Below, in pieces: positions 1 through 64,000 of a stretch of DNA of 64,000 bases (position 1 is its first letter; the number at the start of each line of letters is the position of its first letter). The position numbers and the translations under genes are program-made. The stretch is from Antechinus flavipes (taxonomy: Eukaryota). Under the pieces are notes generated by a model. That model saw only the letters and a list, made by a program, of their open reading frames with translations. It was not told where the DNA came from and did no database searches. The stretch lies in NCBI RefSeq assembly GCF_016432865.1, contig NC_067398.1, positions 678,094,001 to 678,158,000 of the forward strand, in the 5' to 3' direction.

Positions 1-1111
1 CGAGTGGGCAGTACAGCGGGCAGCACCCTGGACTTAAGGAATAGTGGCTCCCCCGGGACTTCCTTCTCAACTCAGAGTGGAGCTGGCTTCTGGATTAGCC
101 CTCCTGAAAGGCATAAGGGAGGCTCAGTCAGCAACACCAACCTAAAGTATACTGTAGCTGCTCAGGAGGCCAACCTGGCAAGGACCCACTCATCTTTGGC
201 ACTAACCACTCCACTTGATGTCTCCAGTACCAGCAGCCCCGTGGTTAACCCCGGAGAGAGCCCTGTCATCCCAAGGTCTCCAACCACAGCTCAAGTCACC
301 ATGAGTACTGCAGGTGCTGCCCTCCCTGCGGCAGAGAGCCTCATTGTACCAACCCCTGCAGTCTCATCGGGAGCTCCTCCCAGGGATGGGGAGCTGGGTT
401 TACCTGGCCCCGGGATGGAGAGCTCACACCTGAGATCTGGGAACCAACTCAGAGAATTTATTCCGACTGCTCACCATCCTGACCTCCCACATGCAGGAGC
501 CCCACACCTGACCACCTCCTTCCTGGAAATTCTGTCCTCCTTAGACAATGTGACCCCCCAGCCAGGTTCAGCTGCCACATCTCTTAACTCTACGACTCCT
601 GAGAGCCCAGAGGTCAGCTCAGCTTTCCCTCTGACCACCTCATCTGCTCTAGCTACGGCCAGAGGCGCCTTGGCCAATGTTGTCGGAGAGAGCCCTCCAG
701 TAGCTTTCTCTGCAGATCCCACCCCTGCCACCACCCGTGGCTCAGCAGTGACCACTCTAAGCCTGACCTCCTTAGTCCTTATAGGACGTGACCCTACTGG
801 TAATGAGGCGGCCAGCGGGGCATCTAGCTCCCCAGAGCAGACACTGACAACTAGCTTGACACCTGCAGCTGCCTCTGGCTCAGTAGCCTCTCCTCCCACA
901 ATGCTGTCTGGTCTCACAGCACTGGCAACAGGAGCAGGTGCCCAAAGGTCTCTAGGGGAGAGCACACCCTCCCTGGAGCCAGGCTTAGGGACCAGCCTTT
1001 CTGTAACTTGGACCTCACCCCTGTGGAAGACCCCATCTTCCATCAGCCTAGATACAAAGTCAGGGACAGGAACCCCCAGGAGCTCCCCTGTCCTGGTTGT
1101 CACCACTTTTG
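1..1111 (+). CDS. Mucin large exon, 5' end outside window
   Basis: Frame 1 open from base 1, PTS-rich; phase-1 donor TTT G|GTGAGT at 1112. Confidence 0.8.
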
Positions 1112-1295
1112 GTGAGTCTGTACCTTCCCTTGGGGGTCTGTACCTGGGGACCCCCCAGTGCATCTAAGCCCAAAGCGAATCTTTTCCTTGAGCCTTGCCC
1201 CTGCATCCCAGATGAGTGCAGCCCCCGTGACTCTGCTCCTTCATGATAGGGGGGGAGTAAAGATGGGGCTGCAAGGACAGTTAATATCACTGAAG

Positions 1296-1520
1296 CAAAG
1301 GCAGTGTGGTGTATTGGATAGAGCACTCAACCCAGTGCTAGGAAAACTTGGGTTAAATCTCACCTTTGATGCTTACTAGCTGGGCAGCTATAGGCAAGTC
1401 TCACTTATTTACTCGAACCTCAGTTTCTTCATCAGTAAAGTGGGGACAAAAATAACCTGCTTCAGAGGGTGTAGGTGATGTGTGTAAAAAACTTGGCAAA
1501 TTCTAAACATTATATGAACG
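1296..1520 (+). mobile_element. MIR/CORE-SINE
   Basis: gcagtgtggtgtattggatagagcac...cctcagtttcttcatcagtaaagtgggg core. Confidence 0.65.
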
Positions 1521-1543
1521 TGTTGTGTCGTGTTGCATTACAG

Positions 1544-1717
1544 GTTCAGAAAAGGGTTCATTGGAAACATCCAAACTAGTGACCACTCCTCCGATGGACA
1601 AGACACGTGCAGTAGAGACAACAGCCTCATCCTCCCTCGAGACCCCAGCCACAGAGAACAGTGTTTCTGAAGCAGGAACAGACTCTACTGTTCCAGCCAA
1701 CCCCACCCTCCTTATAA
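1544..1717 (+). CDS. Mucin exon, 174 nt (GSEKGSLETS...PTLLI)
   Basis: ttacag|GT acceptor; ATA A|GTAAGT donor; phase 1-1; open. Confidence 0.75.
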
Positions 1718-1732
1718 GTAAGTAACCACTGT

Positions 1733-1940
1733 GGGGTGTGGTGGAAAGAGCTTAGCACTTGGGAGCCAGGAAGAATTAAGTTCAAATTCTGATGCAGACA
1801 CTTACTAGCTGTGTGACCCTCTGCCTGGTTTCCTGATCTGTAATGTCACCTACTTTCATGGCTCACAGGGCTATTGGAACACATGACGTGTAAAATGCTT
1901 TTCAGGACTTGAAGAGTTATGTAAAGGCTCGCGATTATTA
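1733..1940 (+). mobile_element. Degenerate MIR/CORE-SINE
   Basis: gtggaaagagc...gttcaaattctg...acttactagctgtgtgacc. Confidence 0.55.
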
Positions 1941-3092: not shown

Positions 3093-3185
3093 GCACAGTA
3101 TCCTCCTCAGATACCCCGGGTCATTTGGGTACAGACGAACCAACAAGTGACCCTTTAGAACCTGTGAACACCTCCAATCCTCTGG
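3093..3185 (+). CDS. Small mucin exon, 93 nt (TVSSSDTPGHLGTDEPTSDPLEPVNTSNPL)
   Basis: ttcttcag|GC acceptor; CTG G|GTAAGT donor; phase 1-1; absent from ORF track. Confidence 0.7.
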
Positions 3186-3804: not shown

Positions 3805-4350
3805 AAAGACCATAAATTTGGAGCTAAAAGAGATCTTAGAGATTACTGAATCCAATCTCTCACTTTACAGATGAGGAGCTAAAAGAGATCTTAGAGATTA
3901 CTGAATCCAACCCCTCACTTTACAGATGAGGAGCTAAAAGAGATCTTAGAGATTACTGAATCCAACCCCTCACTTTACAGATGAGGAGCTAAAAGAGATC
4001 TTAGAGATTACTGAATCCAACCCCTCACTTTACAGATGAGGAGCTAAAAGAGATCTTAGAGATTACTGAATCCAACCCCTCACTTTACAGATGAGGAGCT
4101 AAAAGAGATCTTAGAGATGACTGAATCCAACCCCTCACTTTACAGATGAGGAGCTAAAAAAGATCTTAGAGATGACTGAATCCAACCCCTCACTTTACAG
4201 ATGAGGAGCTAAAAGAGATTTTAGAGATGACTGAATCCAACCCCTCACTTTACAGACGAGGAAACTGAGACCCAGAGAGATTAAAGAGACATGTCCAAGA
4301 TTAGGTGGGTAGCAAGTAGCAATAGCTGAGTTTTGAATCCAGATCCAAAA
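3805..4350 (-). mobile_element. MIR-type SINE hosting the 55-bp minisatellite
   Basis: After the last unit the sequence continues gaaactgagacccagagagattaa...tttgaatccagatc (reverse MIR core). Confidence 0.7.
3821..4260. repeat. 55-bp minisatellite x8 inside a MIR-type SINE
   Basis: gagctaaaag starts at 3821, 3876, 3931, 3986, 4041, 4096, 4151, 4206. Confidence 0.95.
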
Positions 4351-4739: not shown

Positions 4740-7280
4740 AGACCTCAGTGGAGACAGTGAGTGGGGAGACAGATCCTGGCTCTACCACTCCTCAGCCAAC
4801 CAATGTCCCTGAGTCCATCTCTACGAGCAGCCATGGATCTGGGGCACCCACAGAAGCCCCTATGCCAACTGAGATATCTACCCAAGTGACCACAAGACAT
4901 GAAGACCTTTCTCATACCCCACTAAAGCCCACTGTTGCTCCAGGTTCCAGTCCCCCCTTAGAGGCTAGCACACTTGGGATAGTTTCCTCTATTCTCCCTG
5001 AGACAATTTCCTCTATCCTCCCTGCAGCCAACCCAACTGCAGGTATGATCACTGGAGAGATCAATCCACCAGTTCCCACATCATTGTCTACTCCAGTTGA
5101 TTCCTTGTACAGTAAAGTTTTTGGTGGAGGAGTGGGAACAAGTCCCAAAGTCACATGGATACAACCTACTTCAACTGTGATGAAAACTACGTCTCCAACC
5201 CCAGAGAGGTCAAAGTCCCAGGCAAGAAGTGAGCTGAGCTCCTCTACCCTGTCTCCCATTGCCCTGAGTGATGTCCCAATAGCTGTTGGAGGAGACATAG
5301 GCATAACTGTGCCATTTACAAAAACAGCTACCGAGGGTATGGTAGTGATGACATCCAGCACCTTCTCTAAGCCTGAAGAAACATCCCATACCGTTCAAAG
5401 TCCACACCCGAGCTCCTTGGACTCTCCATCCATTCCCTGGACTGAGAGAGCAACCTCTTTGAGTGTAGAAAAGACTCTCTATTCCAGGGCTGTCCATAGG
5501 CCCTCGAGCTCATCTGACACCACAACCAAGACACAGACCAGCAAAGATGCTGCTCCATCTACTGAATCCACTGAAGTCTTGGTTGATCAGGAATCAACTA
5601 GCCCAATTCTTGTCACCAGCGAAAAAACACTGAAAAGTATAAATGTGACCTCCGGAGCCACTCGAGTGATTGAAGCCGGCACAGCAGGGAGAACTTCATT
5701 CTCAGAGACCAGCTTACTCTCATTCCCAGAGTCCTCTGATTCTACTGAGGTCAGAACCAGTCTCACGACAAGTTCTACCAGAAGACCCAGCTCTGAGACA
5801 GACCTGTCTTTTGGCGTCTCCAAGTCAGAGGAGTGGGGCTACTCGACATCTCCCCCCACATCCTTTCTATCTGTGGACGCATTGACATCTGTTGTCAGTA
5901 ATGGAGCAGAAGTGACAGAAGCTTTTTCTCCAACTGCTGGCCCCACGGGGATCACCACTTCTGAAAAAGTCATCAGCTATCTGGGACTTGGAGCCACCAC
6001 TGTAGGGAGCCTTGGGTCTGGGGCGCCTACAGGGACCATCTCAACTTTGGGAGGAACCACCGCACAAGCTGAGACAACTATCCAAGTGACAAGACATGAA
6101 GACCCTTTTCATCCCCCACTTAAAACCACTGTTGCTCCAAGTTCCAGCCCTCCGCTGGAGACTAGTACACTTGGGACAGTTTCCTCTACTTCCCCTTCAG
6201 CCTCCCCAGCAGAAGATCCAATGACTGGCGAGTTTCCCCACTCAGTTTCCACGCCATTGTCTACTCCAGCTGATGCCTTGTACACCAAAATTTTTGGTGG
6301 AGGAGCGGGAACAAGCCCCAAGGTCACATGGATACAACCTACTTCAACTCTGTTGAAAACCACATCTCCAACTCCAGAGAGGTCAAAGTCCCAGGAAAGA
6401 TCCGAGTTGGGCTCCTCTCCTCTGCCTCCTATTGCCCTGACAAATGCCCCAGTGGCTATTGGAGGAGACACAGGCTCGACTGTGGCAGTCACAGAACAGA
6501 CAGCTGAAGACAGGACAGCAAAGATAGCTGTCACCTTCTCGGAGCTGCCAGAAACATCTCTGACCACTCAGAGTCCACGCTCCAGCCCCTTGGACCCTCC
6601 ATCCATTCCCTGGACTGAGGGGAATGCAGAAAAGACTGTCTATTCCAGGGCTGTCCATGGGCCCTCCAGCTCATCTGACCCCACACCCAAGGCCCAGAAC
6701 AGCAAAGATGCTGCTCCATCTACAACAGCCCCAGATGAACAGGCGTCAACAAGCTCAATTTTTGCCAGTCGAGGAAAAACACAGAAAAGTGCCAGTGAGT
6801 CCTCAATAAGCCCCCTGGTGGCCAAGGGAGGAACATCAGACACAGAGACGGGCTCAGAATTCATCGATTCCTTCTACACAAAAGTTTTTGAAGGAGGGTT
6901 GAAAACCACCCCCCGCAGAACCTGGTCCTACCAAAGTCTGATCTCTACCAGCTCTTCGGTGGTAGAATCCCACAAGTCCCTCAGTGCTCCAGATACAAAC
7001 GTGAGCCCATTTTCCTCTGAGACCTCTCTCTCTACTGACGCCAGTACCAGCTTCAGGATAAGTCCTCCTGGAACGTCCAGCGCAAACTCATACACGGCAC
7101 TCACCCACACCCTACTCCCAAGCATAGCTGCAATCAAAGCTTTCATGACTTTGGAGTCAAAGTCTGGGACCCGAGAGACATCGGCTCGGGCAGAGACGCA
7201 AGACCTCCTTTTAGAGGTTACAGCGAATGGGAGCAGCCCTCCGAGGGTTCCCTCTCCTACTCCCGCCACCCTGCTTACAA
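4740..7280 (+). CDS. Mucin large exon, 2541 nt, with internal diverged duplication (~4880-5570 vs ~6080-6730)
   Basis: poly-T-cag|AG acceptor; ACA A|GTAAGC donor; 847 codons; matches ORF 4748..7339. Confidence 0.85.
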
Positions 7281-8972: not shown

Positions 8973-9074
8973 CAATTGGTGACAAGCAAGGTCCCAGTAC
9001 TCACAGTGCAGAGCTGCCTTCAACAGAAGGTCCCAGATCTCCAGTCAGTGAGCCCCTGCTGCCCACCACGCCAG
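8973..9074 (+). CDS. Array small exon S1, 102 nt (IGDKQGPSTHSAELPSTEGPRSPVSEPLLPTTP)
   Basis: gactgacttaccatttctacag| acceptor homologous to S2-S7; CCA G|GTTAGT donor; phase 1-1. Confidence 0.6.
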
Positions 9075-9677: not shown

Positions 9678-12554
9678 ACACAGGGTTATCGAGCAGAAGC
9701 CCAGATGCCGTAGGTACGGGGCACGCATCCCCTGCCAGTGGAGAGGACCCGGAGCCCACCAGCCTGCCTGTGGTTGCATCCTCCATGGGAACCTCCACCT
9801 TTAGGAGCCCAGCAGTGACCGAGCCTGTAGAGACAGCTCCTGGCTCAGCCTCTGCTCAGGCCTCCAGCTTCCCTGTGGGCTCTGCCTCGGGGAGCCCAGC
9901 CCTGGACACCACCCCAGCCTCCATGTCTTCTCCGGTGACAGAGGACTCCAAATCCTTGGAGACTTCTGCCACCGGGACCATGGGCACTGACTCCCTGCCA
10001 CAGGTTCCTACTTCGGGGAAGCCACAGGCGGTTCCAGGCTCCAGCACTCCCTTCCCCTCCGGCTCCCAAGGGACAGTTTCTTCCCTTTTCCCCACGGCCA
10101 GCCCCAGTGCAGACACCACAGCAGCAAGGGAGCCTGACAGCACGGAGCCTGCAGACAGTCCCCCAGGGAGCTCCTTCCCTCCAGAGTTCTCGGCTTCAGG
10201 GCAAACTAGCAGCCACACTCTTTCCCCAGCTCCTTCTCACCCAGGCTTCCATAGCCAAGTCCCAGAGATGGTCCCCACATCCATCCCAATGCACACGGAG
10301 ACTTGGAGCACGGCAGGGAAGCCAGAAAGTGAGACGGGCCCTGGGGCCATTTCATCTGGGCCACCCTCCACTGGACTGAGTCAGTCGTCCTCCCCTGAAG
10401 CAGGAGGAGCAGCCACAGACACAACATCCATGGCAGGGAGCACAGGGACCTTGTTGTTGTCCATCAGTGTCCCTGTATCCACAGCGAGTTCGGGAACTCC
10501 CATCCCTACTAGAATGCCCAGCCCTTCCACGGGGAGCCTGGAGACCTCCTGGCCTGAGACAAGAACCTCCCCTTTCTCTCCCAATGTTGGCCATGGCACG
10601 GGCTCTGCCAGCACCCGGCTCCTCCCGTCGGCATCCCTGGCCACTGGGATACCTGTTGGTATGACTGGGCAGCCGTCTTTGGGGACCCCCATGCCCGAGG
10701 GGGGGGCCAGCGCTGCAGCTTCTCTTGCAACCTTCCCGCCCAGTGGGGGCACACAGAGAAGCACCGGCTGGGAGTCCAGCCCCTTCCTCCTGCATGAGCC
10801 CAGTCCCACAGGCTCTGAGACCACGAGGGACGTCTCTGGCTCCCGGCTTCCTGCACAGACTTCCACACTGAGACACGTCCCAGGTCCCACCGCGGGGCCC
10901 AGCACTGACACACCGGATCTTCCCCCCTGGGACCACAGCTCCAGTGTGCCAGTGACCATTGGTGGGGCTGAGACCCCCGCCGGGCTGGGGCCAAGGACCG
11001 CAGCTGGAGCCTCTGCCTCTAGTGACCCTCTTGCTCATCCTGGGGAAGGTGCAACGGTCTCATGGTTTTCTAGCCCAGCTGAGGCCGCCATGGGTGTGCT
11101 AAGCACCAGCCTGGATTGGCTCCGGATTCCCACAGTAGTCACCCCTGAAGCCCCCTCTGAGTCCAGCACTTTGGGGGATGGTGGGAGTTCTGCTGTCCCT
11201 GGTACTGAAAGGACAAAGCTGACTCCCAGCAGTCAGAGCACAGTCAGAAGGGCCACCCCTCCTGCCTCAGCTTCATCCGTGGAGATCCCAACCCGGGAAG
11301 GAGGGGCCGGGGCAGCTGCCTCAGTGACTGCCTCCCTGTCTGTAGATTCCACTCCCTCAGGCCCTGGTAATGGAGCCCCAGGTTCTGCCTCCTTGGCCAT
11401 TAGCTCCCCAGGGGATGGGAGTAGAACCTATGAGCTGTCAGCCACAGCCTCAGAGACCACCTCTCTTCATTCCCTGACCACGTCACCAGTGGAAGGTTCC
11501 ACCAGGGAAGTCCCAGCTACTGTGACAAGAGAGGGCACTGAAAGGAGACTCAGTCAAGAGCCCCCTACTAGCCCAGAAGTCATCCCAGTCTCCTCTAGGG
11601 ACACAGCTCCCACAGCGACAATCCATCTTCTGCAGGAGGTATCCCTTGGGCCAAGTACAGAAGGTCTGCCTGTCACTGACCTGCCAACAATGACTGAGAC
11701 CACATCCCCATCGGCCCCTGGGCTGGCTGCAGAAGCCAGCTCAGCTTCTCCTCTTGCTCCGGTCACACGGCTCAGCCCTTCTGCCACATCCCCCAAGTCC
11801 ACAGCAGAGACCCGTGGAGCATCTTGGGCCAGGACTGTTTCTTTGCGTCCCACCCACTTCATGACAGAGACCTCAAGGTCTGGGTTGCCCACCCACGCAG
11901 ACAGGGCTGTGTCCACCTTCTCAGAGAATGTCAGCGAGGAAACAGCTTCTATTTCAGCTGCTCCTTTGGTCACAGCAACAGGGTCCCTGGGGTCTACAGA
12001 GCAGGAGTCCAGCCCCACGCGATCAGGCCTGTCCACCACTGAGTGGAATGGTTCCAGTCTCAGCCCTCCTCTGACCAGCGTTTCCATCATCTCAGTTCCT
12101 AGCTCACAGTCCCCTTCCTCTGGCTCTGGGAGCAGCCCCCCAACGCCACCAGACACCAGCTTTGCCAATGCCCTGGACAGCAACTCATCCCCAGGGACCA
12201 GTCTTGTGTCTGTCCAGTCCTCAGAGGCTGCAGCAACTACTTCCGGGCTGTCACACTCCTACCCAGGCTCCTCGGCTGAGTTCATGCCCTCCTCCACTTC
12301 TTGGACCAAGAGCTCTGCACCTGGGATGGCCACATCCTCTGGGTCCCCTGTGACCTTTCCCATCACCACTGGGTCAGAGACGAACATCAAAGGGAGAACA
12401 GCAGGGCCATTCACACCATATTTAGAAAATACGGAGCCTCTGTGGACAACTGTCTCTTCGCACTCAGGGATCAGTCTCCCGGTGGACGTCTCTTCCCCAT
12501 CGGGTATTGTATGGGTTTTAGTTGCTGGTGTTTCCAGCTCGGTCCCATCCCTAT
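9678..12554 (+). CDS. Array large exon L1, 2877 nt
   Basis: ccctcttttag|AC acceptor; CTA T|GTGAGC donor at the position homologous to the ACA A|GTAAGC donor of L7; open. Confidence 0.8.
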
Positions 12555-13067: not shown

Positions 13068-13181
13068 GAATGGATGAGAGCCTAAGTCCCAGCACCCAGA
13101 GTGCAGATCTACCCTCACCTGCACGTCCCAGATCTCCTGCTAGCGAGCCTATGGTGCCGACCATGCCAGCCACTGTTGCAG
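13068..13181 (+). CDS. Array small exon S2, 114 nt (MDESLSPSTQSADLPSPARPRSPASEPMVPTMPATVA)
   Basis: ccttttacag|GA acceptor; GCA G|GTAAGA donor; phase 1-1. Confidence 0.85.
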
Positions 13182-49081: not shown

Positions 49082-49329
49082 GTCAGTGGGTGGCTCCTCT
49101 ATCTTTCCTCTGTTGGGGGTTCCACTTTTCTGGGGTCTCATTTCCTGATCTTTGTCAATGACTCATTGGTTCATCTTTGTAACTTCAGAAGAATGGGCTT
49201 CTGGCTTAGGTTTTGAGCTATCAAGGATCAGAATCAGGAAATTTTATATTTGGAAGAGATGTGAGTAATTATTTGGTCTACTCAAAACTGCAGGAGAACC
49301 CCCATACCAGCCTAGCCAACAAGTATCTC

Positions 49330-49660
49330 AAGTATATCTTTTTCTCGAAGACATCACCTGAAGGAGAATCCACTACGTCTCTCACTTTGGGGCAGCTCTC
49401 ACTGTTAGAAAGTTATTTCCTGACATCAAACATAAATTTACCTCTGCATTTTGAATCCATTGCTTTTGTTTTGGCCTCAGGAGATTACCCAAGAAAGTGA
49501 AATACACCATCCGAACAAGAATCATCCAAATACTTGAAGACAGTCAGTATATACCCCCTTTGAGCCATCACTTCTCTGAGTTAAAGTTTCCTCAGTTCCT
49601 TCAACAGATGCTTATATGGATATGGCTTTGATATGCTTCACCATCTTGCTTGTCCTCTGG
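49330..49660 (-). mobile_element. L3/CR1 LINE fragment
   Basis: caaatacttgaagacag...cagttccttcaac, typical of the reverse L3 3' region. Confidence 0.5.
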
Positions 49661-50350
49661 AATCATATATCTAGAAATTGAAGGGACTTTAGTCGACTAG
49701 TGCAGATGTCCTAAAATAGAGTAAATGGAGACCCAGAGTGGACCTTTGCCCAAAATCTCATAAGGAACAAGCATTAAAGATATAGATTAAATCACATTCC
49801 TTTGAAATCCTCCATAACATTTCCTCTCCCATTTCTTTCTTTCTTTCTTTTTTTTTTTTTTTTTTGATGAAGCATGTGGTATAACAATTTTGGAAAAGAT
49901 TTGGTTAGGACTAAGATAGGTATCCATCAATTGAACCTAGGTTAATTTTCTATCCTAATTAATGCCCCTGCCCTAGATATCAGTAGAACTGCAGTTAAGC
50001 ATTAGTTCGTTCTTATCTCTATTCCATAAGCTTTCCTGGAATTTACATGACCTAAAAATGAATCTTGATATGGTTCATTCAGAGGGGTGTTTCATAAACT
50101 AATATGGCCATCCTAATATGGTTATAGCATAGCAATATGTAGCAATCTGTGGTAGAATCCTTAGACTAAAAAGGAGGCTTAATCAAGAATTGAGCTCAAC
50201 TAAAGAATATGGGGAAAATGAGGTGTGGGGGATTGGGATCTATCTTCATACAGAAAGAGCCTGAGAGGCAGTGAGAATCTTTCTAAATGACTCCAAACTT
50301 CCCCCTGTCAACCCTTACACACATCCTTCAACCAATTGCTCTGGTCACAG

Positions 50351-50990
50351 GATTCTCTACCAGGAGTACAGTGACATTGAAGAATGTGAGTGGGTCTGAC
50401 CTGGAAAAAGAATCGACAAATGTCACCAGCACTCCTATGATTGGATCTACTGTGAGAGATTCCATTTCAGACACTACAACAGAAATAGTTGTCATGGAGA
50501 CAACTCCAGGTATAATATCCAGGTTCTCACTATGGCCACTGTAACAGGTGGCATTAGACCTGAGACACATAGGTCAACCACATAATTCCCTTATAGAAAC
50601 CTCAGTTTCCTGAAGGGATCTCACACTAACTTATAGTGTGAGTTACTATGGGCATTGGAAACCCTGCAGTTTCCATGACTCTATTGGATTCCACAGCCAC
50701 CGCAGGTAATTGTGTTCCCTTCAAAATCAGTCCAGCTTGGACAATTTCTTCCATTTTCCCTGCAGACACATCTATAGCAGAAACAGCCCCTAAAGAGTTC
50801 CAACACACCTTTATCTCATGGCCTGCTCCAGTTGATTCTTCCCATACCACTGTCTGAGTTATAGGAATTGAAATCAGCTAAATTTTATCTTTAATCTCAA
50901 CTTTCTATAGCCATCAGTGTCACAGAGATTGAGTCAAGCCCAGATTTGCCTATGAGGCTAATCATCCCAGAGAAACACTATGCCATAAAA
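50351..50990 (+). pseudogene. Decayed/truncated large exon (paralog of the 52301 and 61740 exon starts)
   Basis: ctggtcacag|GATTCTCTACCAGGAG acceptor shared with 52301; frameshift then TAA at 50542-50544; right end approximate. Confidence 0.7.
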
Positions 50991-51009
50991 ATCTAAAGAG
51001 AAGAGAGTA

Positions 51010-51250
51010 TTCATGAAAATGGGGTAACAGTATTAAAAGCTTCAGAAATATTGAGAAAAGATCATTTGGTTTTGAAATTAAGAGATTGTTAATAACATTG
51101 AGAGGATGAAGAGATTGTTAATAACATTGAGAGGATGATTTCATTTTAATGATGAAGTACCTCTTGTACACAAAGTATCTCAAAGACTTTGAACAGAAAA
51201 AGAAAGAGCGATAAGGAATAATAGCTATCAGGGACAAATGGGTAAAGTGA
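51010..51250 (-). mobile_element. L2 fragment with a 29-bp tandem duplication (51080/51109)
   Basis: aagagattgttaataacattgagaggatg occurs twice in an L2-like context. Confidence 0.4.
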
Positions 51251-51475
51251 TGATTTTTGTTTCTTTGTTTTTGTAGATGGAGTAGTAGAGAAATAGTCAG
51301 TAGACAAGCAGAGATTGTAGTGTGAGACAATGGGACAATAGAGGAACATTCTGCTGTGTAAAGGATGAAGTAAAGAAAGCACATATTTTGGAGTTTGCAG
51401 TCAGAACATATGGAGATAATATATTGTCTTTTCTACTCTCTTGACTGTGATATGTATACTTACTTGATCCTACAG

Positions 51476-51592
51476 GTAGTGAGGTTGCTATAGTGCCTGT
51501 CACACATATCCCAGATCATGAAGCACCAGGAGAAAAGGAAGTACTGACCACCAGTGGCCCTCTGGTACCTGAATCTACTGTAGGCCCTGTGG
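51476..51592 (+). CDS. Small exon, 117 nt (SEVAIVPVTHIPDHEAPGEKEVLTTSGPLVPESTVGPV)
   Basis: cctacag|GT ... GTG G|GTAAGT; phase 1-1. Confidence 0.8.
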
Positions 51593-52300
51593 GTAAGTAA
51601 ATACCTCTTTTCTTTCTCTTGTGCTGGTATTCACCCTTCCTGGGTCTTTCCCCCAGTTTTGAGACAAGATATGGACTCATCTTCAGTCTAAGAGCAAGAC
51701 ACTGATAGGGGAATTTATAATTAGAGTGCAAGATTTGGCAGCTTCATCTGCTATATTATTTTCTTCACTGAAGTATGTTGTGATAAAAAAATGAAGAACT
51801 ACTAGGGATTTGGTATTTTTCAATATTCACTTGCATGCACACATTATTACTTCCCTGATAAAAGTCATCCATAGGAAGGCAAGAGTCTTTTTCATTCTTG
51901 TCTATGCATTCCCAGCATCTAAAGCCCCAAAATGAATGGCACATAAGAGTAGTTGATGCTTTTGATTTTTGATGAGAACATGTATCCACCAGGCAGGCAG
52001 ACTGTCTGAGCCTGGATCCCTAGACTTGTGCCAAGAAGTCAGGGAGATCTGCCTAAGGCACTGATCTCTTATTATTTAGTAATTCTCATGGTGGGGTGGT
52101 CTCATAGACCCAGGCAGAATCCTTTTTGTTATTGAAAATTCTTGTCGAGGAGAAAGCTGAACATTGGAAAGTAATGTGAGAAGTTGGGATTTCATTGTTT
52201 TTCCCAAGAAGGAAGTAGTCTTTAACAGGCAATTTCCAAATGACCCCAAACTTTCCCCATCAACTCTTAGGCACATTTCAACCAAATGCTCTGGTCATAG

Positions 52301-55300
52301 GATTCTCTACCAGGAGCATAGTAACATTGAAGAATATGAGTAGGTCTGACTTGGAAAGAGAATCAGCACAGTTCACCAACACTCCCATGACTGGTTCTAC
52401 TATGAGAGATTCCATTTCAGATGCTGAAACAGAAACATTCACCGTGGAGACTATGCCAGCTACAACAACTGCTCAGCCCTCCCTTCTTCTCACTATGGCC
52501 ACTGTAAAAGGTGACCACAGCCCTGCGACACACAGGACAACCATGCACTCTCCCACAGAAGCTTCAACTCCGTCTGAGACATCTCTTGGAGTGACCATGG
52601 GGGTGGGAAGCCCCACAGTTTCCATGACTCCGGCAGAACTGACAGCCAGCACAGTCTCTGATGGTCCCTTAAAGGTCAACCCAACTGAGAAGATTTCTTC
52701 TACATCCCTTTTGGACACACTTGTATCAGAAAGATCTCCTAGAGAGAGTCACAGTACCACTCTGACTCCATGGCCCACTGCAGTTGACTCCATCCATATC
52801 ACTGCCTCACCCCCAGGAATGGAAATCAGCTCCATGTTGCCTCTATCTTCAATTCCTGCAGCTGCCAGTGATAAAGAAACCACGCCAAGCCTAGATTTGC
52901 CCATGAAGCATACTCCCTCAGAGCAACAGGATGTTCAGACTGTAACGGAGCAAGGGTCAGCTGCCCTGTCCTCCACTGTTTCCAGCATCATTCCAACATC
53001 TGTTGGAGGGGACACAAGCATTTTCTTGGTGTCTACAGAAGGTCCAAGAGAGGATAAAACAGTTTCTAGCACTTTGCCAGACACTCCTGGAATCACTCAG
53101 ACAGAGCAGATTCATTCTACAAGCCGAGGAGGGCCTGACAGAAGCTTCACCTCTTCTCTGGCCCCTCTAAGTGAAGGAGGCAGCTATGCTAGGACTGTCC
53201 CCTCGCCCTCTGTAGAAGGCATGACAAGCCCGGCTGAACCTATCTTGGAGTTCACAGAGCCCACACTTCCAGAGGAGGGCACTCCCTCTGTTGCACCAGT
53301 GACTGAATTCAGCACCACGGACAGTGGAAAGTTACAGAGTAGTTTGGACTCCACCAGCACCCCAGTGTGGGAGACTAGTAGACCAGGCAGCACTGAAGCT
53401 TCAGATACCAGCACACTCAGCCCAGGGAAGTTTCATCCTGCTGAGAGTACAGCTAACCTCATGCCAAGTCCTATGGGAGGGTCCAGCCCAGAACCAGCTG
53501 TCTACACCACTCTATCCCATACTTCAGATATTACTACAGAGACCAAGCTTAGAGGAGAGACAGACTTGTCCTCGATATTAACCACACCAGCATCTGCTGT
53601 CTCCATCATCACTATCTCGGAGGCTCTGCCTGGAATAAGAACAGGGGTTCCCTGGTCCTTGACCTCAGCTGAAAACACAGATATCACCACAGATATCACC
53701 ATGATTGGTAAAGATACTATGTCTACTTTGCCACAGACCTTTTCTCCTCCATCTCCAGACATCTTATCTGAGGTTACTTACAAGGCTGAGGACATGAGCT
53801 CCAATGTTCCCAGGACTGAAAGCATAAAGGTCACAGACATGACCTCTCTTTATCCTAAAGATACTACCAACCAACAATTTTTGGGGACAGTGGAGGAGAG
53901 TAGCACAAGTGTTTCACTGATCACTTCTTCACTTGGACCTCCTGTGTCCTCAGCCTCTATTATGGGAGAAGTAACAAATATGTCAGGTACCACTACTGAC
54001 TCAATGCAAGTGACTACCACACATGGAATCCCAAATAGAGACTCAGAGAGGACCTCAAGTCTCCCATTGGCCACAGAGGACACAGACAATACTTCTACAG
54101 CCAAGATGCCTGGCAACATCTCTGTGCTCCCTACAGAGCACAGCACAGAAGATCAAATGAGTTCAGCCCTGCTTCCTACCACCAGTCCCAGTTCCATGGC
54201 TCTCTCTGTTCCAAGAACAGTTTCCCCCTCATCTACCACAGCTGAAACCAGGACTCTCACCATCACTGGAACAGATAGCATCTCTTCTTCAACTCCTATA
54301 ACCTCATCTGGAGTTACTCCCTTCACTGAGAACATGAGCTCAACTGCCTCCAGGACTGATGCCACAAGTCTCATCTTTAGCACTAAAATCACAGACATTG
54401 TCCCTTTCTCCCCTATGGTCACTTTCAGACCTGAACTCCCAAGTATGGTACCAGAGAAAAGTACAAATTCCCCACTGACCACAATTTCTATTAAAGTTCC
54501 AGTGTTCTCAGATACTAATCCTGTAGGCTCATTGGTCACCTCTGTTGGCTCAACTCCCTTGGAGACTACTCATGGTGTTCCACATGCAGACTTAGAGAAA
54601 ACCTCTGAGCTTCTTCTGACTTCCTTAACCACAGAGACTACAGAAAGTACTATTACAAGCAGAGCAACAGAAGGCATCACCTCAGCTTCTCCAGAGTTCA
54701 ACACAGGAGCTGAAATGAGCTCAGCCATTCCTTCTACCACAAGTCCAGCAGAGATTACAAAAATTTCTGAGGCCATGACATCCAGAGATATAAGCCCTTC
54801 TTCCATGTCACCAGGGGTGCCTACAGTGACTCCTGTCCATATTGGATCAGATTCAAGTCTGGCTTCCGTGACCCAGGATAAGCTATCCAAAACTCAAAGT
54901 CAATCAATCCTTACCAAAGTCCCACAGGAGAGTGACACAGAATTCCCTTGGTCTTCTACTGCAACTGAGGCCACTAAATCAGTGACCATAACAGATTCCA
55001 CTCCAATCTCAGAGTTTCAGGAGAGCCAGGCTTCCAAGCATGGCACTATCCCAGGAACAGAGGCCAGTAGGAACTATCCCACTTTATCTCCTTCAGAAAG
55101 CCCCATGACACATGATACTAGTCCTGAGAGGGCAACAAGCACTGATCAAGCACTGTCCACTTTGCCAGCTGAGAAATTACCTGAAACAGGTACCAGCTCG
55201 GCTACTTTTGTTTCCAAAATGCTTTCTGATGTCACTTCTTCAGAACCATGGACAAGTACTGAAGGGTTTGAAAGTCAAAGCATGTCTATCCTGGAGATGG

Positions 55301-55810
55301 AAACTGTCCTAGCAATTAGTACAGACCCTGCTATGACTTTTATCTCCCCACTGTCAAAGACCACAACTCCTGTCAGCATGGATATGGAAACTAATTTACC
55401 TTCTTGGGCAGCCAGCCCCTCCTCAAAAGTAGAAACAACTTCCAGTCTGGTTGATATCACTGTGGAAGAAACCTCCCAAGGAAGAGGAACTCATAGTCCC
55501 ATCCATGAATCTCCAAGTTCAAGTCCGGGCCCTTCTTCTGCCTTAACTACTCCTGAGACTTGGACAATAACAGGTGCCCTTGAAAATACTTCCCCGTTGG
55601 AGGACTCAGAGTCAGCTGGCCTTACTACAGAGTCTATGAGGAGCTCAGGGGAGACACCAACTCTAGATGTCAGTCTGCCTCCATCCAGAACACAGGAAAT
55701 CTTGATAGCATCTCCAAGCCCAACCTCCATGGCCACAGAAATCAGCAGTTCCAGAGCAGAGACGGCCTCTGTTTCTGCTCAAGTACCTTCCACTTCCACC
55801 CTGTTCACAA
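52301..55810 (+). CDS. Mucin large exon, 3510 nt
   Basis: ctggtcatag|GA ... TTC ACA A|GTAAGC; 1170 codons; ORF 52240..55863. Confidence 0.85.
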
Positions 55811-56290
55811 GTAAGCATATTTTAAGTAAGCCTCCCTTGGATGGGTTTGGGGTGTGGTCCTAGAGGAAATAGATGGTGTCTGTCCAGGGAGGGAAGGTCT
55901 AATGTCTTTCTAAAAAACAGGAAGGAATCTTCTTTCCTTGTCCTTTCCCTCTTTAGCCACTTTAGGGCCTTCTCCTTAGTGCCATATCTATTGAATCAAT
56001 GTGGTCACCTATTTCTATGGGAGGGCAGTTTCACAGTTTCTGTGCTAAAGTGATTCTCCTTTTCTCATTGGTGGGATCCTGATTTCTAAGTCTAACTTTT
56101 ATGGATTATCCACTAGTGAGTTAGTGCTTTGGAAGGAAAAAAGTTTTTTGTCATATGGGAAGAAGTCTGAGAAAGCACGTAAATTTTGGGACTTTACAAT
56201 CGGTGGCAATAATGTACTTCTCTTTTTGTGCCCGCTAATAATGACATGACTGAGCTCTGGGCTCTCCTTTCCCCTCATCTCTCCCTGCAG

Positions 56291-56404
56291 GTGGTGATGC
56301 TGGTGTTGTGCCGGTCACACATGCCTCAGGCCATGGAGTACCAGGAAGCATAGCAGCACTGACCAGAGGTCCTCTGATACCTAGGTCTACTCTTATTCCC
56401 ACAG
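56291..56404 (+). CDS. Small exon, 114 nt (GDAGVVPVTHASGHGVPGSIAALTRGPLIPRSTLIPT), GC donor
   Basis: ctctccctgcag|GT ... ACA G|GCAAGT; phase 1-1. Confidence 0.7.
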
Positions 56405-57054
56405 GCAAGTAGACACCTTCTTTCTGTCTCCCCTTTTGGAAGGTCACATCTTTATGACCTTGTATCTCAGTTTTACAGATAACATATGAGATTATTTAAG
56501 AGATGATTCATCTTCAAAGTTTGAGAACAAGAGTTCAGGATGGGGGTCTTAAATCATGACCATATCTTCTAGCTGTTCCCCCCTAAACCTTAATTCCTGG
56601 AATGTTGTGAGAGTAGCCTCTGAAAGTATAGCTAGTTGGGAACCATATTTACTTACTCAAGCTTGAGAAACACAGGAGGAACCACATCCTCTCCACAGAA
56701 ACTTCTTCAGTTCATCTGAGACATCTGGAGCCATCATAGGCATTGCAAACCTCCAACTCTTCCTGATGCCAGAAAAGGTTACAATTTGTTTTGTTAGAGT
56801 AGTCATTTCCACAAGGACAGGGACCAAATGATTCCTCTTTATCTTTTCATCCTTAATACCTAGCACAGTGTTTGGTACATAGATTGTGTTTGCTAAATGC
56901 TTATTTATCATTGTGTCATTTGTATTATCCATACAGACTATCTGAGTCTGGTTCCGTAGTCCATGTGTTTTTGGATGCTAGAAGAACTTCAGTTAAGCAT
57001 CCATCCAATATAGTTAAAATTCAGTATTAATGTGGCTTTCCATGAGGAAGCAGT

Positions 57055-57300
57055 GATGAATGAATAAAAACCCTGAACATTTATTACATGCTTAGTCTCC
57101 ACCAAGGACTACGCTAAGAGCTGGGGCTATAAGCACAAAAGCAAAGATAACTCCTGCCTTCAAGGAATTTGTTTTCTAATAAGGAAAACAACACATATGA
57201 AGAAGTGGTAGCCAGTAAGGGGGAATTTAATCTTGCATGGTACAGGGATGGTGAACGAAGGCCTAGGAGACTATGTGGACATACTACAATGGAGGAGAAT
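57055..57300 (-). mobile_element. L2 3' fragment
   Basis: tgaatgaataaa...catttatta...ctgccttcaagga. Confidence 0.5.
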
Positions 57301-57737
57301 TGACAAAATTTAATCATAGTTCCAGATCTGGAGAATATCTGGAAGATGAAAATATATGCACCTGGTTGAGGGTAAAGAGTAAAGCAATAACCTTGGATTC
57401 CATGACATAGATCAGGAGAGGCAGTTACTGATAAGTACTGTGAAAATCCAGGGCAGACTTTATAGGAATTAAACAGGAATCCTGCAGGACTAGTCTTTGA
57501 TGTGGACTTCAGGGCCATGATGAGGCTATAGAAGAGATGGCCAGAGTGCAGGTTAAAGTCCCTAAACAAGGTTGATGGAAATGCAAAGGATAAAGTGCCC
57601 ATGAGGAAGATAAAGTGAAGCATTAGGGATCAAGTGTTATCCTTAGAAAATAAAAAATTCTGCTGAAAGAAAATGGATATCCCTGCCAAAGTCTCACCAA
57701 ACCTCCTCACATAACAACCAACTACTCTGGCCCCAAG

Positions 57738-59146
57738 ATTCTCCAGGAACACTGAAGAGAGTTAGTGAGTCTGATGTGACAGGGAAGTTAAGTGTCTACC
57801 AGCACCCCCATGACCAGCTCCACAGTGACAGATTCTGTTTCAGAGAGTGCAAGAGATAGTTATTAGGGAAATCACTACAGGCACAATCACCTGGGGCTCT
57901 CATCTTTCTGTGGTCAAGGTCAAAAAGGGACTCAGACTTGAGACAGAAGAACAGTATCTTTCCCCATAGAAACATCAATTCTTCCTGAATAACTTCATCA
58001 TGAGCTACCTATAAAAGCTGAGGACATAAACTTAACTCTCCATGATTCTGCAACCACAAATCTGATCCTCAGCAAAAATGTTATCCCTTTTTCCTGTATG
58101 GTCACTCTTAGCCCTGAAATCCCAAAGTGGCAGAGCACAAAAAAAATCCCAATGACCACTCCCTGTCCCTAAAACTCCAGTCTCACAGTACTCCTGGAGT
58201 AATCAATCACTTCTACTGGCTTGAGGAGACAATGGCTAATTGTATCCCATATGTAGGCTTAGAGAAAATTAGAGCTTTCCCTAGCCATCTTAGTCATAGA
58301 AGTTAATATTGTAAATATAGTTTTCCCTAATACTAGTTTGAGAGATTTCAGAAAGTTAGGAGATTCAGACTCAGAGAGAAAAGCTCTACATCCAAGTGAC
58401 CAGTGGTAACCACAGTGACCTCTGCCTATGTTGGGTCAGATTTAAGTCTGACTGCTTTGATCTGTCTGATCAACTTGTCTGAGCTACCTGAGACACAAAA
58501 TCTAGTGATCCATAAAATTCTACAGGAGAGTAACACCAAATCCTCATTTTCTCTTACTACAATTGAAGCTTCTGGAGCAAGATCCAGTTTTTGCAGCTTT
58601 TATTCTTACCCCCAGGACTAGGGGAGGCCCAGACTTCCATAGATACTATCTAAGACAGAGAAACTTTATCTTATATTCTTCCTCAGAAAATCCCAGGACA
58701 CATATCACTGGACCTGAGTACCAAGTACAAACCAAGCACTGTCCACTCTGTCAACCTCAAGAAATCACTGGAAAATAGGGACTAGCTCAGCCCCCTCTGT
58801 TTTCACAAAACTGCCTAACGTCACTGCATTAGCATCAGAGATAGATACCCCAAGGTCTTTTGAAGGGCAAAGTACAGCTACCTTGGGGCCCAACATTGTT
58901 CCAGCAATAGGGCTCAGCCCTGCTGTGACCTTGATCTCTCCACTGTCAAAGGTCACAATTTCTAACAATACAAATATGGAAACTATGTCAAAGTCTGTTG
59001 TCTAGGCAACCAGTCCCTCACCACAGGTATAAATAAGCTTTCCCAATATGGTTGTTACCACCTTTGTTGGATCCTTTCTGAACTCTTCCTCAAATACCCA
59101 ATCCCCAATCCAGTCCATGAACCTGCTAGTTCTGCCTTGATCATAA
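57738..59146 (+). pseudogene. Decayed large exon (3' part paralogous to the 44511..48485 exon)
   Basis: 58800-58990 aligns with ~47905-48080; ends ataa|gtaagcagacttctaattaa like 48486; no long ORF. Confidence 0.7.
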
Positions 59147-59251
59147 GTAAGCAGACTTCTAATTAAACTTCACTTTAAGGGGTATTGATGTGGCCCTTGG
59201 GAATATGGGTGGATCAGTGAAATGAGAATTTTTTCTGGGTTAAAGATGATG

Positions 59252-59480
59252 ATAATATAGTTAACATTTTAAGGTTTGCAATGTGTTTTATACGTATTAT
59301 CTGATTTTAGTTTCACAGGAAAGCAGATGTTACTTTAGAGCCCTATTTTCTAGATGAGGAAACTGAGGCAGACATAGATTATGTGATCCTTTCAAGGTCA
59401 CCCAAACTAGTGTCTGAGTCTGTATTTGAATGCAGATCTTACTGATTTCTGATCTAGAACACTCTCCACTTGGCCACAAG
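59252..59480 (-). mobile_element. MIR-type SINE
   Basis: ctattttctagatgaggaaactgaggcag...aaggtcacccaaactagtgtctgag. Confidence 0.6.
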
Positions 59481-59839
59481 AATATCCTTTTCGGCATTTT
59501 CCTCTTTGAACCTTTATTTTGAGCCATTTTTGCACTTGAGTGGTCAGACATGCTATTTACTCCCTTGGAGTAAAATCTAGTGACCTTTGTTACCAGCTCA
59601 TTTTCCTCTTCTTGGGGGACAGGGATGGAGTGAAATGCTGACATTTCCCGTGATTCTAACAAATGTTAGGATTTTGCGATAGTGAAAAAGGACTTTGTCA
59701 TGGGAGTTTTCTGCAACTAGCATGTAGGAAGAAGGAACAGAAAAGTACAATTTGGGGCCTTCAAAAAGTACATATAGGGACATATTTTTCATAGTATCTC
59801 GCAAGTCTCATATTATCAATCTGTGGATCCATCCATCCT

Positions 59840-60260
59840 TTTTTAAAAAAAATTCATTTTTAAATTCAGCCCCTCCCCTGCCCATTGAGAGGAAGAAACA
59901 TATGATAATATAAATGTCACATGTATATGACTGAAAGTCATGCAACACATATTTCTGTATTAGCCATGTTGCAAAAAAGCAAGAAAAATAAAAATAGCAA
60001 AAAAAGTACTTTAGTCGGACTCTGATCATCAGTTCTCTCTTTGGAGGTAGATACATTTTTATCATGGGTACTTTGCAATTATCTTAGGTTGCATTGATCA
60101 GAGTAGTTATTGATCTTTCACAGTTGATCATCATTTCATATTGCTGTTCCTGTCTACAGTGTTCTCTTGTTTCTACTCACTTCACTTTGCATCAGTTCTT
60201 ATAAATCTTCCCAGATATTTCTGAAACCATTGTGTTCATCATTTTTTAACAGCACAATAG
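59840..60260 (-). mobile_element. Older marsupial L1-type 3' end fragment
   Basis: atcagttctctctttggaggtagat...gcattgatcagagta...cacttcactttgcatcagttc. Confidence 0.55.
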
Positions 60261-60262
60261 TG

Positions 60263-60497
60263 ATGTTCGTTGAGTCATTTTTCAGTGATGTGTCACCCTT
60301 CATGACCACAGTTGGGATTTTTTTGGGCAACGAGTGATTGCTATTTCTCTCTCCAGCTCATTTCACAGATGAGCAACTGAAGCAGGGAGGATAAATTGAC
60401 TTGCCCAGGATTACATAGTTGTGTTTGCGGTCATATTTGAGCTCATTCAGATGAATCTTCCTGATTCTAAGCTCAGTGCTCTATCCACTGCCCCACC
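60263..60497 (-). mobile_element. Mar1-like SINE
   Basis: gttcgttgagtcattt...catgaccacagttgggatttt...ccagctcatttcacagatgag...ctctatccactg. Confidence 0.7.
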
Positions 60498-60557
60498 CAT
60501 CATATACCACAATTTGTTCAATCACCTCCCAATTAAATCCCTCATTCATTCTTACAG

Positions 60558-60671
60558 GTGGTGAGGTTAGTGTGGTGGCGGCTACACGCATCCCAGGCCA
60601 AGGAGCAGCAAGAGGCACTGCAGCACTGACAAGTGCCTCCCCAGTGACTTTGTCTACAAGCAGTCCCACAA
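60558..60671 (+). CDS. Small exon, 114 nt (GEVSVVAATRIPGQGAARGTAALTSASPVTLSTSSPT)
   Basis: ttcttacag|GT ... ACA A|GTAAGC; phase 1-1. Confidence 0.8.
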
Positions 60672-61183
60672 GTAAGCAGAAGCCTCATTTCTGCCTTCTC
60701 TTCTGGGGTTCATCATTCTTAGTTCCTTCTTTCTTGCCCCTTGTAGATGATAGATGGAATTTTCTTCACAATTTGAAAAAGACCTCAGAAGAGAATTTGT
60801 CATCAAACTATATGGAGCTGTTTCCATTGCTTTCTCTCAGACTCTGGAGGCTCTGGAGAAACTGTTAGGGATTTTGCATGTGAAAGAAAACACAATCTTT
60901 ATTATTACATGATCAGAATATTAGCCACATGTAACATAGACTGTATATTCTACTTAACCCTAAATTTAACTCTTCTGTGGATCCTCAACTGAGGATGAGA
61001 AAAAAAACCTTGCTCATTTTGCCATTTTTTCCAGCCCCTATCAGCTGTATTGTTTTAGTTGTAGGATTATATTAATTAATAAATGGTCATAAATATCCTG
61101 AGCCCCCAGTAAAACTAGAGCTAGATGGAGATGGTAAATTAAAAAAAATCTATTGTCTATATTAGCAGAAACTGCTAGTTTGA

Positions 61184-61392
61184 AAATAACTGTATGGACA
61201 TGTATACATATATTGTATTTAACATATACTTTAACATATTTAACATGTATTGGTCTATCTGCCATCTGGGGGAGGGGGGATGAGGAGGGAAGGAGGGGAA
61301 AAATTGGAACAAAAGGTTTTGCAATTGTCAATGCTGAAAAATTACCCATGCATATATCTTGTAAATAAAAAAGCTATAATAATAATAAGAAA
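61184..61392 (+). mobile_element. 5'-truncated young L1 (3' end) with 17-bp TSD
   Basis: Same family as 40718 in the opposite orientation; aaataaaaaagctataataata tail; agaaactgctagtttga at 61167-61183 and 61393-61409. Confidence 0.8.
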
Positions 61393-61739
61393 AGAAACTG
61401 CTAGTTTGATACCTGGACTAGTATCCATCAGGCAGTCTCTCTGATCTCCAATCCTTATACTATTTTGCATTTGGGTGTCAGGCCAGGTTCATTTAAGCAA
61501 TACTATTCTTATTATGAGAAATTTTCAGGTGGCCACTCTTCCTTCCACAGCAGTGGATCCCCATTGCTTGGAGGTTCGAAATTTTGCTCAGAGAAATGGT
61601 CATACTGAGAAAGGAGTTTGAATTTGGAGTCAAGGAATTTGAATAGTGAGGTTGGATGATATCTGTGTGAATCTCTGTCATAATGACCTAAGTCCTTATC
61701 AATTCTTAGGTATATCCCAACCAAGTACTTTGGTCACAG

Positions 61740-64000
61740 GATTCTCTGCTAGGAGCACAGTGGCAGGAAGGACCACAGCTCTAGCTGACATGACAGGGGA
61801 ATCGTCAGAGCCCACCAGCACTCCCATGACTGGCACCCTTATAAGAGATTCCACTTCAGGCACTGCATCAGAGACACTCACCATGGAGACAACTTCAGGT
61901 ATAGTATTAACTCATCCCTCCCTTCTCCCTGATGACTTTAGGTTTGAGACACATAGAAGAACCATACCCTCTCCCCCAGAAGCCTCAGCTCCACCTGACA
62001 CATCTTGTGAAGGCACCATGGGCATTGCTAATATCCCACTCTCCCTGACTCCAGTAGAACCCACCATCAGCTTAGAGTCCATTGCTCCCTCAAAAACCAG
62101 TTCAGGTGGGGAAATTTCTTATGCATTCCCTATAGACACAACTGTAGCAGAAACAGGTCATAGGGAATGTCCTGGCACCTACTTGACTTCATGGCCCATT
62201 CCAGTTGATTCTTTCTATACCACTGTTTCAGCCACAAGGACTGAAATCAGTCCCACTTTGCCTCTGTCCTCGACTCTTGCAGCTACAGAAATCATGCATG
62301 TGAACCAAACCACCCCGGAGAAGCGGGATGCTCAGACAGGAACAGAGCCAGGCTCAACTGCTCGACCCCCCCCTGCTCCCAGTATTATTCCAACATCTCC
62401 TGGAGGGGACCCTAGCGCTTTCTTGGTGTCTACAGAAGGAGCAACAGAAGGTCAAACTGTGTCCGGCGCCTTCCCAGAGAACACAGATGCCCCCGGGAGC
62501 ATCCACAGAGAACACATGCACTCCTCAAGCCCAGGAGTAACTCTGTGGCCTGATAGAGCTGCCACTGTTTCTCTGCCCAGTCTAACTGAAGGAAGCAGCT
62601 ACTCCAGAACTGTCCCCTCATCCTATTTGGGGAGCATGACAAGCATGGCCATATCTGGAGCCCAGACAAACCCAGCTAAATCTCCTACCCCAGGGCCCAC
62701 AGGGTCCACACCACCTGAGGAGGGCACTCCCTCTGTTGGAGGTCCCTCTGTGGTACCAGTGCCTGAATTCAGCACCACGGACAGCGGAAATTTAGAGAGT
62801 AGTTTGGCTTCTACCAGCACTCCAGTGTGGGAGACCAGCAGACCTGGCAGCACTGAAGCCTCAGACACCAGCACACTCAGCCCAGGGAAGTTTCATACTG
62901 CTGAGAGTACAACTAACCTCATATCCAGTCCTGTGGGAGGGCCCAGCCCAGAACCAGTTGTCTACACCACTCCACCCTACACACCAGGTACTTCAGAGAC
63001 CAGGCCTGAAGAAGAAACAGTTTCATCTTTGGTGATATCCACACCAGCACCTTCTGCTTCTCTCACCAGCATCTCTGGGATTCTGTCTAGAGCAAGCACA
63101 GGCACCCCGCAGCCCTTGACCTCCACAGAAGCCACAGCTCTCATTATCACTGGTGCAGATACCACTCCCATACAGCCAAAGACACGGTCTCCTTCACCTT
63201 CTGTAACCATATTAGGGGCTGAGGACAAGAACTCAGATGCCCCTGGGACTGAAGTCACAACTCCCATCCCCGACAGCAAGGTCACAGATATAGTCCCTCT
63301 TTCCTCTATCAGCTTTCTCCCTCCTGAGTTTCCAAGTAGAGTGGCAGAGAGCAGCAGTGATATCCCACTGGCAGCCACTTTACCTCCATCTCCCATATCC
63401 TCAACTACCACTGTTGACAGTGTACAAAGCAAATTGAGTACCCCTACTGATTCAATTCACCTGGGAGCCATGACTCATGGAGTCCCACAAAAAGACTTAG
63501 AAATTACCCCAGGTCTCTCTCTGGCTACTCTAGCTACAGAGGACACGGTTAGTTCTATCCCAACCAAGACAACCAAATACAGCTCTATGACTCATCCAGG
63601 GCTTAGCATGGGAGCTGAAGTAAGCTCAGCCCATCCTCCTAGTACCAGCGCAGGAGAAATCCAAGCAAGTTCTAAGACTCTGAGTTCCAGAGAGACCAGC
63701 TCAAGGGAATCGTTGGTGACCACCCACTCTGATGTTGGATCAGGTTCAAGCCTGTCTACTGTGACCAAAGCTGAACTATCCGAGACTCAAAGTCCGTTAA
63801 TCATCACCAAAGTTCCACAGGGGAGTGACACGGGCTCCCCATTGTCTCCTACTACAAGTGAGGTCTCTGGAGCAGGAACCACAATAGCTTCTATTCCAAA
63901 CCTAGGACGAGAGGATATCCAGGTTTCCATGGGCACCACCTTAGGCACAGAAGCCAACAGGACTTCCCTCACCTCGTCCCCCTCCTCAGAAAGCCCCAGG
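61740..64000 (+). CDS. Mucin large exon running off the window end (paralog of the 52301 exon)
   Basis: ttggtcacag|GA acceptor; manual translation FSARSTVAG...SSESPR is open for 753 codons; not in ORF track because no stop falls in the window. Confidence 0.85.

Follow-up and report, generated by a model that had tools for sequence, protein, structure and literature searches.

Two-exon modules in the N-terminal region of a probable MUC16 orthologue in Antechinus flavipes

Exons of the locus

The window, the whole stretch of 64,000 nucleotides (nt) analysed here, was taken from the marsupial Antechinus flavipes (contig NC_067398.1, positions 678,094,001 to 678,158,000 of the forward strand), and the gene within it extended beyond both ends. 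The window very probably represents an internal part of the N-terminal O-glycosylated region of the marsupial orthologue of MUC16 (CA125), composed of repeats of one two-exon module. At the cell surface, the MUC16 product is a long glycosylated rod within the glycocalyx. A scan for open reading frames (ORFs) gave twelve stop-free stretches of 388–1354 codons on the plus strand, each with 40–45% Ser, Thr and Pro, and no comparable frame rich in these residues on the minus strand of the window. Seven of the twelve stretches, between 9.6 and 35.6 kb, were repeated copies spaced ~4.1 kb apart. The large stretches were separated by small open segments, mostly of 114 nt, which were bounded by good AG and GT sites.

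The rebuilt model contained 27 exons on the plus strand, including 15 small exons (93–159 nt) placed between giant exons, which measured 1686–3861 nt where complete. The lengths of all 25 internal exons were divisible by three, and all 26 introns were in phase 1, with the codon split after its first base. The spliced frame of 32,781 nt (10,927 codons) was free of stops, and its product was 45.7% Ser, Thr and Pro (19.7%, 14.4%, and 11.6%, respectively), with only two Cys residues. The original prediction of 27 exons encoding about 11,000 residues of a proline-, threonine- and serine-rich (PTS) domain, all joined in phase 1 and with internal exons that are multiples of three, was thus upheld. 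Its size classes, giants of 1.7–4 kb and small exons of 93–174 nt, were close to the 1.7–3.9 kb and 93–159 nt in the model, whereas the strict alternation of the two classes was broken by runs of small exons (s9–s10, s11–m12–s13, and s14–s15). In the model, the last base of an exon was always G or A, so that no combination of exons can form a stop codon at a junction, and any subset of the exons is joinable in frame.

The first giant exon, G1 (1–1111), was cut by the window start and lay in an open frame of 1–1164, ending at the phase-1 donor CTTTTG/gtgagt (the slash marks the exon border). It was followed by the small exon s1 (3093–3185; 93 nt, phase 1-1), the best open candidate between an AG and a GT in this gap, which aligned loosely with the small-exon template described below, and by the giant exon G2 (4740–7280; 2541 nt, phase 1-1), an open frame with the donor TTACAA/gtaagc. 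The array of seven modules, each ~4.1 kb long, occupied positions 9684–35582 and was preceded by its first linker, s2 (8973–9074; 102 nt). The giant exons of the array were A1 (9684–12503), A2 (13833–16631), A3 (17965–21009), A4 (22399–24663), A5 (26009–28840), A6 (30231–32504), and A7 (33897–35582). They were separated by linkers of 114 nt, namely s3 (13068–13181), s4 (17140–17253), s5 (21574–21687), s6 (25214–25327), s7 (29405–29518), and s8 (33075–33188).

Downstream of the array, the small exons s9 (41692–41805) and s10 (43307–43420), both of 114 nt, preceded the giant exon G10 (44625–48485; 3861 nt), which had the donor TCACAA/gtaagc and an alternative phase-1 acceptor at 44511. The next exons were s11 (48977–49081; 105 nt), m12 (50351–50509; 159 nt), s13 (51476–51592; 117 nt), and the giant exon G11 (52271–55810; 3540 nt). 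The small exons s14 (56291–56404) and s15 (60558–60671), both of 114 nt, were followed by the giant exon G12 (61710–64000), which was cut by the window end. The intron after s14 was of the GC-AG type, with the donor CCACAG/gcaagt at 56405, and a donor scan restricted to GT misses this exon. Exons s2, m12, and s14 were found by aligning a Tasmanian devil protein with the window. A Pfam search of six giant open stretches (G1, G2, A2, G10, G11, and G12) gave nothing meaningful.

Gene identity and support for the junctions

When G11 was searched against 1.84 billion representative proteins, only 18 proteins matched, and all named matches were from marsupials. The best match was the Tasmanian devil protein P0004 (5518 residues), onto which the window exons mapped in order. 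The identity of the window exons to P0004 and to a second devil protein, P0034, was 74–100%. The C-terminal part of P0004 contained ten SEA domains, which matched the SEA structure of human MUC16 (7SA9) with an E value of 3.5e-52. P0034, an NCBI model of 6130 residues, contained the same exons and tandem SEA repeats and was named mucin-16. Its C-terminus, which lies outside the window, showed by eye a hydrophobic stretch followed by a short tail. MUC16 is the only mucin with several SEA domains in tandem (PMC1552070). Two features of MUC16 were found in different places: the long N-terminal region rich in Ser, Thr and Pro was the 10,927-codon frame itself, and the tandem SEA domains were carried by devil proteins that contain the window exons, no SEA exon being found in the window by tblastn. 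The original prediction had described an unidentified "cassette mucin"; the devil mucin-16 and its SEA domains point instead to a MUC16 orthologue.

The public names of related models were misleading. The models P0008, P0010, P0002, and P0019 bear names such as "flocculation protein FLO11-like" (wombat), "uncharacterized protein" (koala), and "mucin-2-like" (opossum). These wombat, koala, and opossum models all carried MUC16 linker and giant exons.

For 22 of the 26 junctions, windows of 51 residues centred on the junction aligned with models from devil, koala, or wombat, in most cases ungapped and at identities of up to 98%. An orthologous counterpart was present in devil models for 23 of the 27 exons. 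Among the small exons, s9 was 86% identical to residues 1539–1575 of P0004, s10 was 95% identical to the devil sequence and occurred in koala and wombat models as well, and s13 was 79% identical to the devil sequence. Exon m12 shared 90% identity with residues 1615–1666 of P0004, s14 was identical in protein sequence (100%) to residues 2834–2870, and s15 was 95% identical to residues 2872–2908. Exon s11 was 97% identical to P0035, P0036, and P0001 and was absent from P0004 and P0034. The giant exon G10 was 89% identical to residues 668–1950 of the devil isoform P0036 and was also found in koala and wombat, and G11 was ~89% identical to P0004, evenly along its length. The first array linker, s2, was 64–70% identical to a devil small exon (residues 955–987 of P0004 and 371–403 of P0005).

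These orthologous junctions matter because phase-1 sites are abundant in sequence of this composition: 44% of the AG dinucleotides inside the frames were in phase 1, and the phase-1 GT dinucleotides numbered hundreds. Phase is thus weak evidence where orthologous junctions are lacking. The uniform phase, moreover, was inherited from one duplicated module and does not represent 26 independent events.

The two-exon module and its turnover

All fourteen window exons of 93–117 nt, together with four from opossum "mucin-16-like" proteins, aligned to one template of ~38 residues. The template contained the core V-x-P-V-T-H-I-P-D-H-G and a second block, T-S-G-P-L-x-P. The giant exons shared the start G-F-S-T-R-S-T-V-T-L-K-N and typically ended with S-A-x-V-P-x-S-S-T-L-F-T. 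These alignments show, at the level of sequence, that the region is composed of repeats of one ancestral module, a linker exon of ~114 nt and a mucin exon of 1.7–3.9 kb. By the opossum sequences, the module already existed before American and Australian marsupials diverged. Since both introns of the module are in phase 1, its copies are symmetric (1-1), and tandem duplication, loss, and skipping all keep the frame.

The array units, introns included, were 86–94% identical in DNA, and their junctions matched devil and koala proteins. Exon A3 contained an additional in-frame tandem duplication of 213 nt (2.1 copies, 89% identical, at 20031–20468). This duplication explains why A3 is longer and indicates that repeats also grow inside exons.

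Each array unit contained two candidate donors, located 51 nt apart. The downstream donor, CCCCAT/GTGAGC, looked stronger and was homologous to the donor of the other giant exons (TLFT/GTAAGC). It was disabled in unit 2 by a 1-nt deletion before the site and in unit 4 by CT in place of GT. In units 1, 3, and 5 (12554, 21060, and 28891; CC(C or T)(C or T)AT/GTGAGC), the exon-final T and the GA of the next exon formed TGA, so that use of this donor would give a truncated protein or a substrate of nonsense-mediated decay. An exon model with the stronger-looking downstream donors was dropped because of the TGA at these three junctions. The upstream donor, TCGG/GTAYWG (TTGG/GTAATA in unit 6), was present in all units in phase 1, placed Gly at the junction, and left the frame open throughout. 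It was also the site used in devil and koala proteins (SSPTG/IGKSL) and is probably the real donor in the whole array. Alternative donors had originally been assigned to units 2 and 4 only; they do exist there, whereas the supposedly canonical donor gives T/GA in units 1, 3, and 5, and the "alternative" one is probably real throughout.

When the array (9600–35600) was compared with positions 44000–64000, the G+C content reached 60–62% in segments of the array and was ~46–52% in segments over the older giant exons G10–G12 and ~39–45% in segments over introns. The excess in the array might be due to GC-biased gene conversion among its tandem units.

Decayed copies of giant exons were located within long introns. 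One pseudo-exon (58373–59125, plus strand), in the 4.15-kb intron between the linkers s14 and s15, shared 33–34% identity with G10 and G11 over their 3′ portions and had six stops in 751 translated bases. Exon m12 was a stub of a former giant exon, and the decayed rest of that exon followed at 50523–50902 in other frames. A weaker giant-exon remnant lay at 38823–39134 in a 6.1-kb intron. The locus would change in length in two directions. It would grow when copies of the 4.1-kb genomic unit cross over unequally, which would have given the seven diverged copies, and decay of giant exons into intron sequence would make it shrink, leaving adjacent linkers and pseudo-exon remnants. The claims that exons can be duplicated or lost without breaking the frame were borne out by the array and by the pseudo-exons, respectively.

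Exon inclusion, alternative readings and comparison with other systems

Gene models of other marsupials differed by whole exons. In the devil, the Ensembl model P0036 contained G10 and s11, P0035 contained s11 without G10, and P0004 and the NCBI model P0034 lacked both. The opossum "mucin-16-like" isoforms X1–X5 differed by in-frame blocks that ended at linker/giant borders, and one block was a giant-exon segment of ~886 residues. In G11, devil models took an internal phase-1 acceptor ~55 codons into the exon (about 52430), and the koala model took the upstream acceptor. In G12, devil models spliced out an internal piece of ~125 codons from an m12-like donor near 61898 (sites 61886–61905). Parts of G11 and G12 may thus behave as optional intra-exonic introns. 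NCBI and Ensembl alternative models usually reflect junctions seen in RNA sequencing. The skipping of exons foreseen in the original prediction is supported only by these annotated isoforms of devil and opossum, and its further proposal of combinatorial splicing rests on predicted transcripts.

These model isoforms make it plausible that alternative inclusion of whole exons would also vary the length of the rod. A tentative and rather doubtful extension holds that the symmetric modules are true cassettes. Tissue-specific inclusion of kilobase exons and 38-residue linkers, together with the copy number of the 4.1-kb array, would then set the height of the glycocalyx as a counterpart of the titin PEVK spring, and this flexibility would have been lost in eutherians, with the region fixed in about five exons. 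A simpler account, to which we give nearly an even chance, is that all 27 exons are constitutive parts of one giant isoform, the phase-1 symmetry being a historical by-product of module duplication with no role in splicing. A uniform phase follows automatically from the duplication of one module, the devil and opossum isoforms are computational models, and the corresponding region of human MUC16 is nearly without length variation (PMC13345508). Against constitutive splicing, the three Ensembl transcripts and the one NCBI model of the devil differed exactly by G10 and s11, and the opossum models dropped giant-exon blocks at exon borders. In addition, a rough splice-site matrix gave strong sites for the linker exons and much weaker sites for the giant exons. 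This pattern fits regulated inclusion and is only suggestive.

Several observations weighed against reading the whole window as an expressed part of MUC16. The link to MUC16 came through gene models of a related species, as the window contained no SEA, transmembrane, or first exon, and the annotation of koala and sugar glider separated the PTS part from the SEA part. Exons G1, s1, and G2 had no counterpart among the marsupial proteins compared, a homologue search with G2 gave nothing within the allowed length range, and s2 matched only a paralogous array linker. The model of G1, s1, and G2 rests on splice signals and an open frame only. The donors and acceptors of the array giant exons were weak by the same matrix, and the NCBI devil model began only at an A7-type exon, so that expression of the array as a whole is putative.

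The last two points would also suit a reading that takes some of the region, the GC-rich array units above all, for young pseudo-exons that have not yet acquired stops and are no longer expressed coding sequence. Pairwise dN/dS ratios (nonsynonymous to synonymous substitution) among array exons were 0.5–0.9, and the values of up to 0.9 in some pairs point the same way. We consider this reading improbable. Six units of 2.3–3.0 kb had diverged by 6–14% without a single stop, and all nine distinct indel events in exons A1–A6 were multiples of three (3 to 555 nt), whereas the indels of the adjoining introns were mostly out of frame (8 of 42 multiples of three). The truly decayed exons in the window were full of stops, and the Ensembl devil models included array units. 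By these sequence comparisons, the exons are coding and under frame-preserving selection.

It is more improbable still that the window belongs to one or several marsupial-specific PTS genes of their own, which lie upstream of MUC16 and which the devil annotation fused with it in error. In favour of separate genes, koala has two "uncharacterized" LOC models here, a sugar-glider gene without Pfam domains (2334 residues) ends ~370 bases before an SEA-bearing "mucin-16-like" model on the same strand, and opossum has several "mucin-16-like" models. Against them, annotation often splits very long genes artificially, the exons are connected to SEA repeats in both the NCBI and the Ensembl models of the devil, SEA domains lie on either side of these linker and giant exons in opossum models, and the window contained no stop, signal peptide, transmembrane segment, or phase break.

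With the window taken as part of the MUC16 orthologue, the closest comparison is with human and mouse MUC16, which share the giant N-terminal O-glycosylated region and the tandem SEA repeats; their transmembrane segment and short tail have a probable counterpart in the hydrophobic stretch and tail of the devil protein P0034. In the human gene, exon 3 exceeds 21 kb and is the largest internal exon of the genome (PMC3467050), and a variant table places cDNA (complementary DNA) position 36,874 already in exon 16 (PMC13271734). Counting back from exon 16 at about five short exons per SEA repeat, the human N-terminal coding region of ~36 kb was estimated to lie in about five exons (1–5), whereas at least 27 exons cover a similar length in the marsupial. 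For the sizes of the human N-terminal exons, the literature gave indirect statements only. Human exons 2 and 4 are small and may be homologous to the linker exon. According to a knockout study (PMC2650410), a frameshift would follow if the giant exon 3 of the mouse gene were skipped, whereas the marsupial internal exons were all symmetric.

The PTS domain of chicken Muc13 is likewise spread over many exons, each of them a repeat unit, and splicing control of mucin length was proposed on this basis by Lang, Hansson & Samuelsson in 2006 (PMC1552070), so that the idea of splicing-controlled length in the original prediction was not new. The same arrangement, an exon of its own for each PTS repeat unit with frame-compatible borders, was found in the window: all 25 internal exons were 1-1 symmetric, the small exons were homologous, and the giant exons shared motifs. 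Muc13 is, however, another gene with small, near-identical exons, whereas the unit of marsupial MUC16 is a pair of linker and kilobase exon, its copies are old and diverged except in one young array, and some can be seen in a decayed state. The disordered, extensible PEVK segment of titin is encoded by many symmetric exons, and its length depends on which of them are included, as experimentally established. The principle of symmetric exons, a disordered segment, and length by inclusion is the same, although titin, an intracellular protein unrelated to MUC16, has very small exons in this region, and alternative splicing in marsupial MUC16 is predicted only. Phase symmetry and disorder (PMC3632108) also belong to the exon-shuffling rule for class 1-1 modules of extracellular proteins. 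The marsupial exons shared with these modules the symmetric phase 1, the disordered extracellular sequence, and tandem duplication. The rule is general and describes no specific system, and the marsupial exons, at up to 3.9 kb, were far larger than typical shuffled modules.

No paper on the architecture of marsupial MUC16 was found in the literature. The same junctions were, however, already present in models of other marsupials at NCBI and Ensembl. MUC16 is thus a known gene, the principle had been proposed, and the junctions are part of automatic annotation, but no earlier description was found of the two-exon module, of its scale, or of the turnover visible in it. Mucin length is usually thought to vary by the number of repeats inside one huge exon. 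In the orthologue of the clinically important CA125, a domain of this kind is divided among many symmetric exons, and both births (the young array of seven units) and deaths (the decayed exons) can be seen. The locus offers a natural system for asking whether splicing sets mucin length and how kilobase internal exons with weak splice sites are recognized. For annotators, marsupial models named "uncharacterized", "FLO11-like", or "mucin-2-like" at this locus should be read as pieces of MUC16.

Two minor observations were made in the window. Minus-strand ORFs of 200–300 codons overlapped giant exons, for example at 44560–45471, 34597–35487, and 24059–24814. They were rich in Val, Gly, and Leu but not in Ser, Thr, and Pro, and the composition of the sense strand most likely explains them. 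In the intron between s1 and G2, a unit of 55 bp was repeated 8.1 times with 98% identity (3820–4262). It probably represents either a young minisatellite or a section of a repeat element.

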